A stretch of 63,641 bases of DNA, counting the filler, from Platydemus manokwari (lineage: Eukaryota), in NCBI GenBank assembly GCA_037951405.1. It is 6 parts of 6 records of this genome, joined end to end, with 100 filler letters (N's around TTAATTAATTAA, not from the genome) between each part and the next. Parts side by side here need not be neighbours in the genome. Positions count along the whole stretch, not along the records: positions 10,757 to 20,257 come from JBBMOY011239986.1; 5 more parts are not named here. The stretch is one strand, 5' to 3'. This document shows, piece by piece, positions 10,757 through 20,257 of this stretch. The notes beneath the pieces are model-generated. The model had not been told where the DNA came from. It worked only from the letters and a program-made list of their open reading frames with translations, and did not search any database. The position numbers were made by a program, and so were the translations under genes. The stretch's first letter is position 1. Every line of letters begins with the position of its first letter.

Positions 10757-10955
10757 TATAACATAATCACCCATCAGAAGGATTTATTAATTGAAACATT
10801 TATTTATTAAATGTCATTTACAATAAACTGTATGAATAAATTTTTTACAAATTTTATTAATTTGGTAGTTGAGAACAATTGTAAAACAAGGAATAATCAA
10901 CATGTTTTATATTCTTCGAATTTTTTTTACAATAATCTTAAAATCAGAATCTTTT

Positions 10956-13900
10956 TCAATTGGACTGCAATGCTTTATCTTCATCGGTTGATTTCGGTGG
11001 CGACAACGTATCCGTCTCTTTGGATTTGGGTTTGGATTTGGGTGGTTTTGCTTTCGAATCTTTGTTACCTTCACTAAAAAATGGAACGGAGAATATATTT
11101 TCCTGGAAAATCAAAGCCAAACTTAATACACTGAAAACAACATAAAAAAATGTAAGTAACGGCACACAAAAATAAAATGTGCCAGAATAATCACTGGTGA
11201 CAATTCTTGGATTGAAAATTTTAAATTTCGCTGTTTTCGTAACACTGCCTCGTTCATTCCTGGCTTCGCACTGAACGACATAATTTCCAGAAAAATCCCA
11301 AGGTCCGATTAGTAGAAAATATTCGGAAACCGTCAATTGTGAAGGACCTTCTATTTGAGTCCAGGTGATTGTCGCTGGTGGAAATGCAACGACATTGCAT
11401 CGTAGATATTTTCGGTACATCATAATATGATGGAGGACTGTTATTGAAACGTTGTGTGGTCCCACTTCCACACGAATCAATCTTTCATCTCTCGCTGTTT
11501 CACCTTCACCAGCTGTACATGTAATTTTAATATTATTTCCAATATGTTTTTTAGTGAGAGTGAGAGAATGCAAAGTTTTCGGTTCAATAGGTTCTGAACC
11601 CCTTTGAATGTATAATACATAAGTAAGACCACTTTTGCATGACAGTGATTCAGTTGTACAGGTAATGATATCACCGACTAAAAACATTGATTTATCTTTT
11701 GGGTTGATCGAGATTGAAGGAGGATTTAAAGAACAGGCTGAATAATACATAAAATAAATTTAATACGGTTGTATTATGAATGATAGGACTATTATTATAT
11801 GGAACCAATATATTATCACAAAATGTGCTTATGCCTAATTGGTAAGTGATGCTAAAATTCCTTAGCGATAGAAATATCTAATGATTTATTTAAAGTTTTA
11901 CCCCTTACTGATCAGATGAAAGTACTAAAAAGTCGTTCTATCGGTGGTTTTTATTGGAATTGATAATAGTTTAGTTAAAAAATATAGCTCATAATCTTTA
12001 CGGGTGTCAATTAAAAATTGTTTCAGATATTAAAAATATATCAATGAAAATTAACATTTCATAGGTATTATCAGCATTTTAGTTTCATTACGTTCTTTAC
12101 ACCCGACCTTCACTACATAATCTGATATTTTGTAAAATCCTGATTTGTCAGGTCTCAGACCCTCTATGGGTGCTCTGACTTCGTCTTGCCAACCTGTTCT
12201 ATTAAATAAACCATCGGGATTTCTTACAATCATCGTAATTTTTGAATGGACCAAATTAACACCTGAACATGGCATTGGTTTTATATCCGTTGTATAATTG
12301 ACACATAAGTAGCATTTTAAAACATTACCCGGATAAACCTCATTGAGATCCAAGTTAAATTTCACATAGTAATTTCCTAAAAATGCAAAATCAGATTAAT
12401 TAAATCGTGCGTGATAAAATTTTACAAGCTAGATAGGCAGATATAATATCTTGTGAAAGGAAAACAGTGGCCCAGTGTAACTCAGCAACAAGTATTAAGT
12501 ATTTTTAAAAATTGTTATGATGAAATTAACATATTTTTCCCAAAAATTGTTTAATGCGGCTAGATAAATATGAAATTGTTTCAGTTAATCTATGATTTTC
12601 GACTAATTTTCTTATATTATAATTATCTTATAAATGATATATAAATAAATGTTAATGAAGTTCAAAATCGGAGTTAGGTCTGTACTAAGATACTTAAAAT
12701 TCATTTTGAATAAATAGTAAATTTTATTAATAACTTTACAAAATTTTCGTAAGAGGGTTAAACCAGTGAAAAACAAGTCACGATTTTTAATAAATTATGA
12801 GGTAGCATTAAGCACAACCATTGGCTCACATAATTATTAACAGCACATAATTATCACCTGACAGGTAATAAGATTTTAAAGTATTGTACTACTTACTATT
12901 CTGTAATACAAACATTCACGATTGGTATTTAAAAAATACGCTTTAAGAACTTATAAACATTGTTCTTACTATATTTGAGCTTCTAATTTTAAAAAGCAAA
13001 AAATAAACTTTAGAGTTTTACTTATTTGGCCTGTAATTTTATTTATCTAATTTCAATTTTGTCTCTATCATTAATCAACCATATTGAATGCCTAAATTTG
13101 ATACTTCTGTATTTATCGCTGTTTTATCTTATATAAACAACAATTTTTATTTATTTGTGTATACTTTAAAATTGGTAATTTGTATTCTTATTAAAATTGG
13201 ATCTTCAAGGTTATTGAAATTAAGCACTTTTGTAAAATTGATCATTTTGATTCATCTGTCTATTCATTAGCAATTCTATTATTTTTAAGTTCGATTTAAT
13301 TTAAAATTGGGAAATACTGAATAACTCGGTTTTGTCAATAGTTAATGCTTAAATTCCAAGTTCTTCTATTGAAAAAAATACCCCAAAACATTATTTCAAT
13401 ATTGCTGATACAGCTGAATTTTAACCAGGTTGGATAATTAGAATGCAAATGGAATTATGTTTCATGAAAGAATATTTACTAACCAAATCATCTTATTTAA
13501 CTGTAAAATCTCAAGAATTCAAATTGGGATATTAAATGATTGTTTGGAGGACTTGTATTATTTTGGTATAACATTTGTTCCCGATAATTTGTTTATAATT
13601 ATGAAATTAAAAATATTTTTCAATACATCTATTTAATAATATTCTGGAGCTATGCGTTGGTTATGTCATTTTATACTCTTAATATTATTATTACTATTAT
13701 TATTATTATGACAACATAAAATTAAATCACGTGAATTTTGTAGTAAAATTGAAATTGGTGAAAAGATAATTTTAATAATTTAATAAATTAAAAAAAATTG
13801 ATTTGCATAAATACTGGACAAAGTGACACGCAGTATCTTTAAACATCACTCCTTACTTGTTACTTGAACAGTTTTCCATTTGTTGAGACAGGTATATTGT

Positions 13901-16900
13901 TTATTAATGTAAGTCGGGCAACATCCTAGGAAATTAACTAACTGCTTAGGACCAATAATCGTATCGTTTCCCTGTCTCAGTGGGATTTCCATCAATTCAC
14001 CATTTTCATTAATTATTGGACCCTTATTGACTTGCATCTGGACGGGTATTATAATTGATTCAGTGACGGCCGATTGATTTTTTATAACCGTGAAAGACGA
14101 TCGGCATGTCAAAGAATCCAAATTATATAACTGGACAACTTTTGAAGTATCGATGTTGGATATTTCTGAAACTATAGAAACGGAGTTAATAAAATAAATA
14201 ACTAGAGACTTCAAAGAGTAGATTCCAAAAATAAATATTTAATTTTAGAAGACTCTGCTAATGTTCTAATAATAAAACTATACAAGAAACGGTGTTCAAC
14301 TTTTTCACAATGAATATGATTAATATACGGAGTTATTAACGTATTATTTTCTCATTAATTGAGAGAAGAAAACCTTTTTTATAATATTTCATACTAAGGT
14401 CTCCATTATCCAAAACTAATGAGGTAATAAAATTATATAAAGAGTCTTATTTTCGGGGGTCATACTAAGTCAGTTGTTAAGACCCATCTTATAATTGATC
14501 TCACTCATTTAGTAACCCTTATCACTAGTTATCTAATGATTCTCATAATTGCAAAAATAACTTAAATTGTGAAGTGTTTCATACATATTGATAAACTGAT
14601 TTATCATTTTATAAATTACAACAAATTCCAACTACCAACCGATAACCTTCAGCTTTATCTGTTCTCTGATGATTTCGTGCTTCGAAGTGACACCTTTGCA
14701 TTGATAAGTAACATCAACGTTCTTTTTTAAAGTTTTTGGAATTATCATTCGAATTCTTAACTGGTCTACTTTTTGAATATCCATTCGAGTATCCGGTAAA
14801 CAGTCCAGACAAATCAAAATTATATCATCAATGTTGGTACCATTACAATCAATGGTAAATCCCTCCAACTGGTACTCCGTAATCCACAATGGATGAACCG
14901 GAACGAATTTAACTTCCGGTCGGTCTGTAAAATGAAAATTCAGATGAAAACAATTGAAATTCAAAAACTTAATCACCTCCCGAATAAATAATTGCCGGAG
15001 TAGTGAGTCTATCGTTAACCAAACAAAATGCAAACATTCTATAATTTGAATACTTTTTCGTGAATATCAAAACACCACTAGTTGCATTATCGAACTTAGT
15101 ATCATTATAATTTGCCATTTGCGATTTTGGATAAGCATAGAGAATTCCATAAAGAATATATATAGGAATAACTGGAACGGGTGCTCCGGTCGCAGTTACG
15201 TAATATGAAGTGTTACATTTAATTACAGCACCAGGCAGAAAATCATAAACATTTATTTCTTTATCACTATTGACGAATTGAAGTTTAGTATAATACAATC
15301 CTAGATTAATAATATCAACAGGAATATCAAACCAATTCCAAAAGTACCCCCAATAAAAATCTTCACTTTCAACACTAAATGAAACGAATCGCTAACTGTT
15401 GATTTGTACACTCCAAAATAACATATCAACCCAAGTGATCCACTTGGTTTCGAAATCAAATTCTCCGGTATTTGGTAAACGGTTACATTCAGACTTAAGA
15501 ATAATACATTCTTAATAATAAGAATTATAAAATATCAGTAAAATATCATTAAATAAATTAAACATTTAATATTGATAGGTTCACAGGCACTCTTGAGAAT
15601 TATTTGAAAGACAAACAATAGACTTAATGAGCAAAAATATTCTTCATTGGAAAACGCAAAATAGCTGTATTAAGAAAAGTAAAGTCATACACAGTCGAAC
15701 TGTGAAAATTAACAGTCTATCTATATTATACCTAAATATCTATGATTATTTGCAGACAATTATATATATATATATAAACATCTAGAAATAATTATTATCA
15801 CCAATTCTCGTATTTCTACTGAGACTTTTTCGTAGTTTTTGAGATATTATTAGAGAAATATCACGAAAATAATCAAGGTTTGCATTTTTCAAAGAGTATG
15901 AAGTTGAAATATTAACAACGCGTTGAAATTATGTGTAACAAACAACAGAAAAAATTGGATTTGGTATTACTTATGAATTTGAAAACGTTTAATTTTAATC
16001 TAAATGGTTTGTTTTAGTAAAATGGCTTGTCTGCAAGAAAAAAGTGTTTTAGTAATGTTATAAATGTTTTTGAGTTACCGTATTTGTTTAGATTTGATCA
16101 GTTTTAAAGTTCGGTATTTATCTCATTAAATAAACTTGACAAAGATCAGGTGACATCGGAAATATGGATGAAATCGATATGCATGGAAATGAAATTTTTA
16201 AACAAAACGATTGTTTATTCAATAGCTCTGGTGAGTCAGATCCTAGGAACCGAATAAATTATTATAAAATTTATGAAACATTGGAAAGATTATATCAATA
16301 GTATAAGAGAAAGGTGGGAAAGAGAGCGATTATAGATCAGGATAAATATTGTGAAGTACCACTTATACAAAGATTAAACCCATTTCTGGGTTAGAGTTGA
16401 TATTTTGTATTTATGTTATATCAAGAAGTCGGATCTGGAGCTCTCTGGGAAACAATTTTTGATACTGAGTCTGATTTATTTGGTCATGTTTAAAAAGTTT
16501 AAATTATTAATACCGATGATGAAAATTTACACGTCTCTGGCAGATTGGCGTTAACTCCTACCATTTATTTGATATTTTAATTTCTTTATGACATTTAACC
16601 GAGGAAATATGATAATAAATTTTTAAAATATCCATTTCATTTTGTCTCTCTGATACAATAGTCCTGGAAATAATCATTTTTTTTCTAAAATTTATCAATC
16701 TTATTCTTCATTATAAACGAATCATATTGGTATTTCTAAATGTTCAGGTTCCTTGATAATTCATCTTAGTGGTAACGGCACAAAATGCTTCAAAATACAT
16801 TTCACATTCTTTAATGATAGATTATATAGGCCAAAAGAAAATCTATGGATCTATGGAAGCACGTATAGTTGAGATTACCAATTTGTTTTCGACTTAAACA

Positions 16901-19632
16901 TAAAACTATCAGAAAATGAAAATTTTTTCATTATAAAACAACATCAGATTCTTTTTTGTAAAACATTATTAATAATTTTCCAGAGACTCCGTTGGATTTT
17001 TAAATGAAAACTTATACTTAACACTTTCTGACAAAGTTTCGACTTGCCTAGCCGTTGGGCTTACCATAAATATCAATGATACTAAATATTTTATAAGGAA
17101 TACCTTGATCTTATGTGTATTATATAACCTGATTGATCGAGATCAACGAGATTTATGAAAACTACCGGTGGTGCACCGGTGATATTTGAAGAAACAGAAT
17201 TAGACCCATTTACTTGGCATGACACCTTTTCACCGGCATCATAGTTATGCAATGGATTCCGTTTTTTTCCTTCGGTAAATGAGGCTATCTTACCTTCGAT
17301 GGTTTCTATAATTACATAATTAAAAAAGTATATCAAATAAGATGAAACAAAATACCAGCTATATAGAACTTTAAATCTCTAGACTCCAGACTACCCGATG
17401 AGCAGGTTGCTACTACGTGTTTAGACAAGTCTTCGTTTTTCGATATATCTGTTTTGATTATTAGATTATTGCCTACAGCTTTCGCAATTGCAGGATTAGT
17501 AATTTTCGACCAGCTAGGAACTGTGGGCTTGCAGTTAGCCACACAGACTATCACTTGAGTTGGAAAGAAAAGTAATGAAGTAAGATTGGGATAGTGACCC
17601 ATTCCATCAAAACCAACAATCTGTAAGCGATGTGCATCTAAAATCGAATAGATAATTATGATATTATTTTAAGTGATATTTTAAAATGATATTTAAAATG
17701 TATGTGAAGATTTATATTGTTTATAAATTATTCTGTTTCACGATTGAATTGAGCATATTCTCGATTAAAATTATACCAATCTACAAAGAACAACTTTGTA
17801 TATCCTTTCAATTTAGCAACATTCCCGCGTATGCCATTCACCATGGTGACATTCAGATGTTTACGAATATTTTCTAACATTTACTTGTAAATTACTATCA
17901 AAGAAAAAATATTTAAAATTTCAATATTAACTCTCATTAGGAAATTCTTGTTCATAGATACCGCAACCAACGACATAGATTTCATCGAATTTTATTGTAG
18001 GTTTTGATATGAATTTAAGCATTTTGAATGAAGTACATGGATAGTCAGGATCCTTATTTATCCATCCTGCTAATATCAGACATGAAACAGTCTTAATTGG
18101 ATTGTCATGAAGTATAGAAACCACTTTGATGATTATAGAATGAGTATCATTTCTAACTATACAATGGCTGTACGTTGTGGATTCTTTCAACGTTAATTGT
18201 GGAGTACTACAAGCCGCATCTAAACAGAGTTGAATATGAAAAGCACTGCTCACACCACGAACTAGAAAAAATAAATTGTTTATTAAATGGTTTTATAGTT
18301 TAAAATAATTTTATATTCATATAAAATACCTAAAAATTGTAATTTCTAATTTTTCAATTTATCGACAAAAAAAATTTGACTGAGTTTCATAATTACAAGT
18401 ATTATGAAATGTATAAAATGTTCAGATAAAATGCCAAAATAGTCTTTGAATTCAATTTGAATTATATTTAGAAGATAAATGATTTCTGATTGGAAAAGTG
18501 GTGATTGATATGGACAAAGATTGTAATAAAGTTTTGAAAGGCTTAATGATTTGATAGTTCTCCCTCGAAATGAATCAATAAATATTTACCACTTTTAGGC
18601 GTCAAATGTTTTCGAGACGGTAACAATTGCTATGAATAGAATGATTCTTACGATTTTCAAAGATGGGTCAGATCGCAAGGGTCATTGTATGCCTCATCGA
18701 CTAATAACTAATAAATAGAAACTTACGATGTGAAAAGCAGAAATAGTTTGTTTAAATATATTGGTTCAAAATATATCTGATGTCGAGTAGTAGCAGACAG
18801 CAATAATTAATATTCTTTTTGGATTAATTTAAGAAAAGGGGTCTTTGATTGTTGTCTAGTAATAATGAATTTTCGCGCATGAGGTAATATATAATTTATT
18901 TTTATATAAAATCAAAATGAATAATTTTTTCGTCACACATTTTAGGATGTCTAATAAGGACAAAATATAGTTTTTAAACTAAGTTCCTATTCTAATTAAA
19001 ACCCTTCTACATAATTTTTTGATTTTGTAAAGTTTAACTCATGATAGGTTTAATAGTCTAACATTACTTGATTTTGTCAAATAATTGTAAAAGTTAAAAC
19101 TATTTCTCAATTCGTTTATAATTTTAAACAAATTTCAAAGAATTACAATTTGACCTAATTTGATCATTTTTTCAAATAATCAAATTTTAGGATATTTCGA
19201 ACCTCTGGTGTATTTAATATTTGATTTCAAACCACTAAATTTCTTTTTAAATACTTATATAAAAAATTCAAAATGTTTTTTAAATAATATAATTAAATAA
19301 ACTACACAGATTTTTACAAAACGCTCAACAAATTAAAAATTTTATTTTTATATATCTTTTCTGAATATTAGCCTACTTTTTTATTTTCTTATATTTTAAT
19401 AAACAAATAATAACATTTTTAATCATCATAAACAAGAAAATTTTCTATGATAATATTAAATTCGCAACTTAGAATTTTGACATCAATTTTTAATTTCAAG
19501 TCTTTAAAATATCAAAAGGAAAAAATGATCATGAATAATCATACCATAATCTGGATTGATGTCACAAGCCAAGATAGAATGTCTCAATAATAATTGTTCC
19601 AAAATGTAGATAATTAACAAACTAACGAGCAT
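10956..19632 (-). CDS. Multi-Ig-like-domain type I transmembrane protein (10 exons, ~1,015-1,025 aa)
   Basis: Manual GT-AG splice model with consistent phases. Exons: 19632-19545 (MLVSLLIIYILEQLLLRHSILA, signal-peptide-like; in-frame stop upstream), 18261-17932 (alternative donor giving end 17962), 17637-17356, 17305-17104, 15493-15348, 15300-14977, 14924-14640, 14171-13857, 12376-12056, 11737-10956. Repeated B-strand-like motif (FFPTQVIVC, YDAGEKVSC, FLPGAVIKC, YPGNVLKC, FLVGDIITC). Canonical last domain LRC..FPPATITW...SGNYVVQCEARN. Hydrophobic stretch FYFCVPLLTFFYVVFSVLSLALIF, then a ~49 aa tail. Confidence 0.82.
18837..19297 (+). repeat. Dispersed AT-rich repeat, copy 1 (intron 1 of the Ig-like gene)
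   Basis: Colinear similarity to 63141-63641; shared blocks include ATGAATTTTCGCG, AAGTTCCTATTCTAAT, TTTTCAAATAATCAAATTTT and AAAAAATTCAAAATGTTTTT. Confidence 0.8.
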
Positions 19633-20087
19633 AAACTTAGCAGGTTAATATTTAAAAATACCATGAATTAGAAATCCATAAATCAATTTCTATAGAAAAA
19701 TTTTATATTTTTCATAATAATTTATTTTACTTTTTAATTAAAATTTGAAGTAGAATTTTCATTGAAAATATTTACGAATAACATAAAAAAAACATTTTAA
19801 AAATAAAAATACTTTATTTAATTATAGTTATCGTTGAAGAATTATGGTTTGTATATTTTTAAAATGTTCTATATAAATATATTGGTTTAACATTTTAGTT
19901 CCACAGAAATAATAGTTCAATAATTTTGATGTTTCTAACAATATTCAGATAAAGAATTGATATTATTTTAACACATCTATGTTTTCAAATCTGTAGTCAA
20001 CTTAAACAAACGAGAATCAGATATGATTATATTATGGAATGCAGAATAAAACTGGCCTTGAAGACAATATAAAATTTTAATATATTA

Positions 20088-20257
20088 CTGTAAAATCCCG
20101 AGTATAAGCTGCAGCGCGTATTAGCTGCAGATGAAATTTTAAAAAAATGTATTTTTTAGTCGTATAAACTATTGAAGAAATTGAAATTGAAGAAAATGAA
20201 ATGAATGTGAACGAGTCTGATCCAAACATTGTAGAATTACTAGAAAATTTCACTTTT
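20088..20257 (+). mobile_element. Possible pogo/Tc2-like deleted DNA transposon end
   Basis: TA followed by CTGTAAAATCCCGAGTATAAGCTGCA resembles pogo/Tc2-type TIRs; an acidic reading (EEIEIEENEMNVNESD) follows. The second TIR is not seen because the contig ends. Confidence 0.3.

Follow-up and report, generated by a model that had tools for sequence, protein, structure and literature searches.

The genomic stretch analysed here (the window) comprises 63,641 nucleotides (nt), and the gene studied lies within the part at positions 10757-20257, taken from record JBBMOY011239986.1 of the Platydemus manokwari assembly GCA_037951405.1. On the minus strand of this part, from 19632 to 10956, ten exons are predicted to encode a single-pass membrane protein whose ectodomain is a string of nine immunoglobulin (Ig)-like modules. 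Tables of splice sites and a translation of this strand in three frames served to rebuild the gene model by hand. The joined coding sequence of 3,075 nt reads in a single frame through 1,024 amino acids (aa) and a stop codon. The original prediction for this stretch had described a spliced frame of about 1,020 aa with a signal peptide, nine cysteine-paired modules, 15 N-x-S/T sequons, one transmembrane (TM) helix and a tail of about 49 aa, and the rebuilt model reproduces it, with the tail counted at 48 aa. The exons (E1 to E10), the modules that they encode (D1 to D9) and the associated features are as follows.

E1, 19632-19545, minus strand: start codon and hydrophobic leader (MLVSLLIIYIL...ILAC); phase-1 end, donor GTATGA
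E2, 18261-17932, minus strand: module D1, 110 aa, six Cys, phase 1-1
E3, 17637-17356, minus strand: module D2, 94 aa, phase 1-1, canonical Cys-Trp-Cys Ig pattern
E4, 17305-17104, minus strand: N-terminal half of D3, including the B-strand Cys (KVSCQV); phase-2 end
E5, 15493-15348, minus strand: C-terminal half of D3, F-strand Cys (GLICYF); phase-2 acceptor, phase-1 donor
E6, 15300-14977, minus strand: module D4, 108 aa, phase 1-1
E7, 14924-14640, minus strand: module D5, 95 aa, phase 1-1; preceded by a 52-nt intron
E8, 14171-13857, minus strand: module D6, 105 aa, phase 1-1; donor GTAAGG
E9, 12376-12056, minus strand: module D7, 107 aa, phase 1-1
E10, 11737-10956, minus strand: D8, D9, TM helix, tail and stop
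D8 (first part of E10), 11737-11481, minus strand: Ig fold by AlphaFold and Foldseek, conserved in the family
D9 (second part of E10), 11480-11196, minus strand: I-set-type Ig domain (Cys, Trp, Y-x-C)
TM helix, 11183-11103, minus strand: about aa 950-976, hydrophobicity maximum
Cytoplasmic tail and stop, 11102-10956, minus strand: 48 aa, stop codon at 10958-10956
Three AATAAA hexamers, 10783-10858, minus strand: candidate polyadenylation signals by sequence, 100-175 nt past the stop
Open frame 'A', 16892-16811, minus strand: rival or relic frame outside the preferred model

Gene structure and coding evidence

All nine introns have GT-AG borders; three measure only 47, 50 and 52 nt, the others 294-1,610 nt. 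Eight of the nine are phase 1, the sole phase-2 intron being that between E4 and E5, which divides module 3. One domain per exon with phase-1 introns is a feature of membership in the Ig superfamily (IgSF), and the same pattern is found in a relative from Spirometra. The G+C content is 35.9% in the exons and 24.6% in the introns, within a piece that is AT-rich throughout (19-37% G+C per 500 nt). The coding signal is far above chance, since all eight stop-free segments of at least 90 aa fall on the minus strand, against 0.36 per strand expected from shuffled sequences. An in-frame TAA stands four codons 5' of the start ATG, the ATG is followed by a hydrophobic N-terminus, and the protein carries its 15 sequons against 8.1 +/- 2.6 in shuffles. 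A codon-usage scan found in none of the introns a further coding-like open frame that might supply a tenth module, and scans for Rfam families, tRNAs and tandem repeats returned nothing relevant to the gene. Judged from its sequence, the locus is a real, intact ten-exon protein-coding gene with a predicted splice chain. At the start of exon 8, two in-frame phase-1 acceptors lie 6 nt apart (14165-14171, TATAG/TTTCAG/), a pair that could permit NAGNAG-like alternative splicing with a gain or loss of two residues.

Module 3 depends in the model on a choice between two acceptors, since the phase-2 end of E4 is compatible both with E5 and with open frame 'A' (SRKQIGNLNYTCFHRS...). E5 has a positive codon-usage score, restores the frame, reaches a phase-1 end 47 nt before E6 and completes a Cys-paired module of 116 aa. 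Frame 'A' offers a textbook F-strand motif (QIGNLNYTCF), but it runs into a TAA with no phase-compatible donor and its codon usage resembles that of non-coding sequence. E5 was preferred, and 'A' rejected as an exon of the main chain, because E5 restores the frame and 'A' has neither a usable donor nor coding-like codon usage. The rejected frame may be a relic or decayed duplicate half-exon, or else an alternative terminal exon that would yield a secreted three-Ig isoform. Its TAA, in intron 4, adjoins an ATTAAA hexamer.

Membrane-proximal Ig pair, transmembrane helix and tail

D8 and D9, the only two modules for which the Ig fold is directly supported, are Ig domains on the evidence of AlphaFold, Foldseek and a family profile. 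The product of E10 was folded by AlphaFold with an alignment of 11 family sequences (A1), at a mean predicted local distance difference test score (pLDDT) of 77, and the model shows a pair of beta domains and, after them, a long helix at residues 176-214 of the exon product. Compared with PDB by Foldseek, the D8-D9 model gave at least 500 matches at E <= 0.001; the 50 matches listed are all tandem-Ig structures, mostly adhesion molecules, and include CEACAM5, JAM-A, contactin-2, NCAM2, neuroplastin, MuSK, nectins, sidekick and Dscam. As a single sequence D9 matches the Pfam families Ig_3, Ig_2 and I-set, at E 3e-5 but below the gathering scores, and through D9 the A1 profile retrieves neurofascin, contactins, Dscam, titin and Robo from PDB at E 7e-20 to 1e-15, the values for neurofascin, contactin and Dscam being 7e-20 to 1e-17. 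D8 has no Pfam match and yet is predicted to take the Ig fold, so that the absence of a Pfam match is no argument against an Ig domain in this protein.

The TM helix (FYFCVPLLTFFYVVFSVLSLALIF) contains zero charged residues and gives the Kyte-Doolittle maximum of 2.38. The tail opens with a conserved juxtamembrane segment, FQEnxFxvPFFS, of which the motif FQE-x-x-F-x-x-PFFS is common to the three closest sequences, and continues as a Lys/Pro/Ser-rich stretch with a KPKS repeat. None of its 48 residues is a tyrosine, and it therefore holds no immunoreceptor tyrosine-based inhibitory or activation motif (ITIM or ITAM). A Pfam scan of the tail gave no match and hence no kinase or phosphatase domain. 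A 12-nt tandem repeat (2.1 copies, 11019-11043) encodes the KPKSKPKS of the tail; no other part of the last exon evolves as fast as the tail.

Distal modules

On their Cys pattern, their exon structure and weak signals from hidden Markov models (HMMs), D1 to D7 appear to be Ig-patterned modules. All nine modules of the protein have a Cys at relative position 22-34 in the context h-x-C and another at 71-100 in the context Y/V-x-C; over 5,000 shuffles, the mean was 2.3 of nine modules and the maximum 7. The full Cys-Trp-Cys pattern is in register in D2 and D9. A generic Ig HMM was built from 360 domains of the sequence matches retrieved in this work, and its scores were tested against 200 shuffles. 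The real score was reached by 1 to 7 of the 200 shuffles for D2-D5 (3 of 200 for D2) and by none of them for D8 and D9. D2 lines up in register with the HMM at its B-strand Cys and its C-strand Trp, D5 does so at its F strand (VTYQC), and five of the ten modules of the Spirometra relative beat shuffles against it.

D2 also gave a match in PDB to designed WD40-like WRAP-T repeat proteins, with a whole-sequence E of 1e-5 and no single stretch passing alone. The match spans 33 residues (GHYPNLTSLLFFPTQVIVCVANCKPTVPSWS), encoded at 17529-17627 on the minus strand and corresponding to residues 13-45 of translated exon 3. It was set aside as probably inflated, because the targets carry identical repeats.

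Relatives in flatworms

With the last exon product as query, HMMER scanned 1.84 billion representatives and gave 41 matches at E <= 0.001. The family matches, with E-values from 3e-93 down to 3e-5, include the following sequences.

P0046, ENA assembly ERZ27257134: 64% identity to the window protein
P0001, ENA assembly ERZ27257134: 58% identity
P0002, run SRR33002330: 30% identity
P0008, run SRR33002330: about 24% identity
P0004, UniParc: 31% identity over D8-D9 (E 7e-21)
P0031, NCBI assembly GCA_052370215.1: 28% identity
P0010, Spirometra erinaceieuropaei VZI04163.1, 1,008 aa: about 24% identity
P0042, Spirometra sp. Aus1 KAL7057384.1, 1,019 aa: about 24% identity
P0045, Dibothriocephalus latus VDN39199.1 (UniRef A0A3P7REQ0): about 25% identity
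P0025, Protopolystoma xenopodis VEL21160.1 (A0A3S5A6I6): about 29% identity

These relatives align in register across D8, D9 and the TM helix and are annotated as unnamed or as 'Ig-like domain-containing' only; the remaining matches are generic Ig-repeat proteins of fish and corals (hemicentin-like, VCAM-1, CD22-like). In a local search among the retrieved matches, D8, D9 and the TM helix align with the named flatworm relatives at E 1e-15 to 1e-12. The in-register Ig pair is accompanied in the family by an F-x-x-x-N juxtamembrane motif and the TM helix. In those family members that it matches at all, Pfam finds only the last Ig domain, and the members have been filed as hypothetical, unnamed or 'Ig-like' because standard domain scans see only one of their nine or ten modules. 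By sequence, they form an uncharacterised IgSF family that has so far been seen only in flatworms. No relatives were found in a JGI metagenome scan with alignment A2, a word-index search returned two homologues for the last exon and none for the D1 and D4 exons, and we found no description of the D8-D9-TM family in the literature.

The gene had been called orphan-looking in the original prediction, a description overturned by these unnamed flatworm relatives, among them the 1,019-aa Spirometra gene, which has the same plan and an identical position of the last intron. Its surmise of a probable flatworm agrees with the nearest named relatives, the parasitic flatworms Spirometra, Dibothriocephalus and Protopolystoma. 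Its suggestion of a lineage-specific family fared better: relatives occur in flatworms, and ERZ27257134 and SRR33002330 each hold two divergent members. Likewise sustained were its statements that the protein lacks FN3, kinase and phosphatase domains, in that Pfam at E <= 10 found neither these nor another additional domain in any exon, and that it fits no named IgSF protein, in that the last exon product, when compared with all 1.84 billion representatives, recovered no one-to-one orthologue of that kind.

The Spirometra gene resembles that of the window in having a leader exon, one-module phase-1 exons, a last exon with two Ig domains and the TM helix, and a similar total length. Its last intron occupies the same position as in the window, a single residue ahead of the conserved Cys at the start of the last exon. 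Phase 1 can be read at every junction of the gene except one, and the gene spans 30 kb. The tapeworm relatives differ from the window protein in having a tail of only about 8 aa.

Two further observations concern individual relatives. In a contig of SRR33002330 (L005:2-619), some 430 nt upstream of the exon for D8, D9 and the TM helix of P0008, there is an open frame of 205 aa in which three beta-like segments contain Cys. No similarity of this frame to the window protein was detectable; the frame may place two modules in a single exon, and exon fusion may differ between family members. The first 70 or so residues of P0010 differ from the signal-peptide start of its orthologue in Spirometra sp. 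Aus1. This N-terminus seems to resemble a reverse-transcriptase fragment (KSPGSDEIPAKILKEL), and it is likely to be a mis-annotated first exon in that record.

Conservation and selection

In alignment A1, C113, W125 and L134 are invariant, and C73, Y152, C156, N160, F171 and N175 are near-invariant. Compared with Spirometra, D8 and D9 score far above shuffles (z = 9 and z = 22.6, respectively) and D1-D7 are not alignable. Against P0004, D6 retains the GCC..YIN..C motif only, and D7 alone is not alignable. Since D8, D9 and the TM helix alone are conserved, the core of the family is Ig-Ig-TM, and the distal ectodomain and the tail are labile.

The last exon is under purifying selection, with a ratio of nonsynonymous to synonymous substitution rates (dN/dS) of about 0.2 over D8, D9 and the TM helix. 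With the two closest relatives as reference, D8 and D9 have a dN/dS of about 0.1-0.3, and dS is near saturation. The ratio is <=0.3 in the TM segment where it can be estimated, and about 0.9, nearly neutral, in the tail of the closest pair.

Nature of the protein and alternative explanations

We hypothesize, with a probability of roughly 70%, that the gene encodes a type I membrane glycoprotein with nine tandem Ig-like modules, a member of a flatworm-restricted IgSF family with a presumed role in adhesion or recognition. The layout is that of a classic IgSF gene, with a leader exon, one module per exon, one split module and a terminal Ig-Ig-TM-tail exon. The leader would be cleaved and the ectodomain glycosylated, in a type I topology, and the protein would work in adhesion or recognition at the cell surface. 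D8-D9 and the TM helix, which are conserved, would fix and orient a rod of about nine domains and may also engage a partner in cis; contact with a ligand or counter-receptor would fall to the variable distal modules. The tail appears unstructured and has no known signalling motif. It is also short and poorly conserved, and the tapeworm relatives have almost none of it, so that signalling, if there is any, would depend on an associated protein. Apart from its place in a hitherto uncharacterised, lineage-restricted family of single-pass IgSF proteins, this would be a fairly ordinary IgSF gene. Surface and recognition molecules of flatworms are poorly catalogued, and the family is now defined by its Ig-Ig-TM core and exon plan. 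Alignment A1 provides a handle for finding further members in the genomes of parasitic flatworms, and opens the question of whether these are adhesion molecules, host-interface proteins or recognition receptors.

Several observations weigh against this reading. Pfam gives no match for D1-D7 even at E <= 10, PDB sequence searches with D2, D4 and D5 returned no Ig match, and with the generic Ig HMM D1, D6 and D7 do not rise above the level of shuffles. The expectation that AlphaFold and Foldseek, applied domain by domain, would return Ig folds was realised for D8 and D9 (pLDDT 77); for D1, folded without an alignment, the result was uninformative (pLDDT 49, with a predicted N-terminal helix). 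The Spirometra gene has ten modules, in eight one-module exons plus two in the last exon, whereas the window gene has nine, so module-for-module orthology is unproven. A single public run carries the locus and it is a DNA run; the splicing is inferred because no RNA run holds the locus. Finally, the assignment of function draws on analogy with Ig-only adhesion receptors.

Of the alternatives, that of a fast-diversifying family of self/non-self, gamete or immune receptors survives best, although we consider it unlikely. The protein would then be an analogue of the Alr proteins, with hypervariable distal Ig domains on a conserved stalk. The failure of D1-D7 to align with Spirometra, while D8 and D9 align strongly, would suit such a family, as would a D7 unrecognisable against P0004 although D8-D9 are 31% identical; long taxon separation alone could, however, produce the same divergence. 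The occurrence of two divergent members in each of two samples also favours it. The word-index result for the D1 and D4 exons as against the last exon points the same way, but the missing matches could reflect fragmentary assemblies. A contig of 5,290 nt from the only DNA run is identical to window positions 14300-18969, with zero variants in exons 2-7, so that no heterozygosity is visible in that sample; as evidence against heterozygosity it is weak, because contigs can drop minor variants. No second family member or other paralogue is annotated within 10 kb on either side of the Spirometra gene, the tyrosine-free tail has no ITIM or ITAM, and the dN/dS of about 0.2, measured on the last exon only, also counts against the idea. 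Nothing observed speaks for it beyond the quick divergence of the distal modules and a modest degree of paralogy.

Like Alr1 and Alr2 of Hydractinia, the window protein is lineage-restricted and single-pass, with an Ig-like ectodomain barely seen by standard HMMs. The Alr family is marked by high allelic polymorphism, clustered paralogues and homophilic, allele-specific binding; its proteins, of about three domains each, are encoded in a large polymorphic gene complex and bear motifs in their tails. The window protein has nine modules and a tail with no motif, and the one DNA run shows no polymorphism in exons 2-7 of its gene. It is improbable, in our view, that flatworms possess a recognition system of their own in which a stalk and TM helix present rapidly diversifying distal Ig domains and the window gene is one of several paralogues. 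If true, it would be a system for self/non-self, mate or gamete, or host-interface recognition in parasitic flatworms.

Slightly less probable again is that the gene descends, with strong divergence, from a named and conserved IgSF protein as its orthologue, either an auxiliary subunit of the basigin/neuroplastin type or a neural I-set cell adhesion molecule (CAM) minus its FN3 domains; it would then be no invention of the lineage. D9 is indeed a typical I-set domain, closest to the Ig domains of contactin, neurofascin, Dscam and Robo, and the D8-D9-TM model aligns over about 225 columns with neuroplastin in plasma membrane Ca2+-ATPase (PMCA) complexes. These similarities, at 12-20% identity, are nevertheless generic to I-set domains; no named protein is a reciprocal-best match in the scan of 1.84 billion representatives, and the in-register matches across D8, D9 and the TM helix are all unnamed flatworm proteins. 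Members of the basigin family have two or three Ig domains and a TM helix with a conserved charged residue. In place of these features of basigin, neuroplastin and embigin the window protein has nine modules and an uncharged TM helix, and the structural match is generic.

The neural I-set CAMs contactin-1/-2, neurofascin, Dscam, Robo, DCC and NCAM resemble D9 in their I-set domains (A1 profile, E 1e-20 to 1e-10), but the match is to one domain, and the window protein, unlike them, is without FN3 domains, a glycosylphosphatidylinositol (GPI) signal or a long signalling tail. The features of Dscam, Robo, DCC, L1CAM, nephrin and sidekick are likewise absent, as D9 abuts the TM helix with no FN3 between them and the tail is 48 aa long. 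Those of receptor tyrosine kinases and phosphatases are also lacking: the tail is short, and it ends at the stop codon at 10958-10956 with the AATAAA hexamers beyond. The vertebrate adhesion receptors VCAM-1, ICAM-5, CEACAM5 and CD22/Siglecs are, like the window protein, Ig-only and single-pass, with several Ig domains in a row, one TM helix and a tail that is short; the best structural match of D8-D9 is CEACAM5 A3-B3, and the sequence matches include VCAM-1 and CD22-like proteins. This likeness is generic (13-20% identity) and implies no orthology, and the window tail is without tyrosine motifs.

Equally doubtful is the idea that most of the N-terminal modules adopt folds other than that of Ig, whether beta-rich or novel, so that a two-Ig stalk would carry a different kind of ectodomain. 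The lack of Pfam and PDB sequence matches for D1-D7 would fit this, as would the low pLDDT and predicted helix of D1 and the shuffle-level scores of D1, D6 and D7. Moreover, hhalign, run on all module pairs, detected no similarity between any two. Against it, an Ig-like Cys pair in the h-x-C and Y/V-x-C contexts occurs in nine of nine modules, the modules lie in phase-1 exons of 282-330 nt, and D8 is equally without a Pfam match and yet folds as Ig. The Cys and Trp of D2 are in register, and D7 of P0004 resembles D8 of the window (E 0.004). It is very improbable that the spliced frame is an artefact or a decaying pseudogene, for which the lack of an RNA run with the locus, the stop that ends frame 'A' and the unusual phase-2 intron needed for module 3 might speak, given ten exons joined stop-free over 3,075 nt, a strong exon/intron G+C contrast, open frames on one strand, purifying selection on the last exon and an exon plan conserved in Spirometra.

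A high-copy repeat in intron 1

Within intron 1, at 18825-19367, the summed contig depth in the DNA run climbs from about 13 to values as high as 100,000, and hundreds of short contigs that are 85-95% similar, together with many internal joints, map there. Scans of this segment for tRNAs and Rfam families gave no match. The segment belongs to an AT-rich interspersed repeat that is present in the source genome at very high copy number. Weak inverted repeats connect 19267-19319 with 19769-19826.

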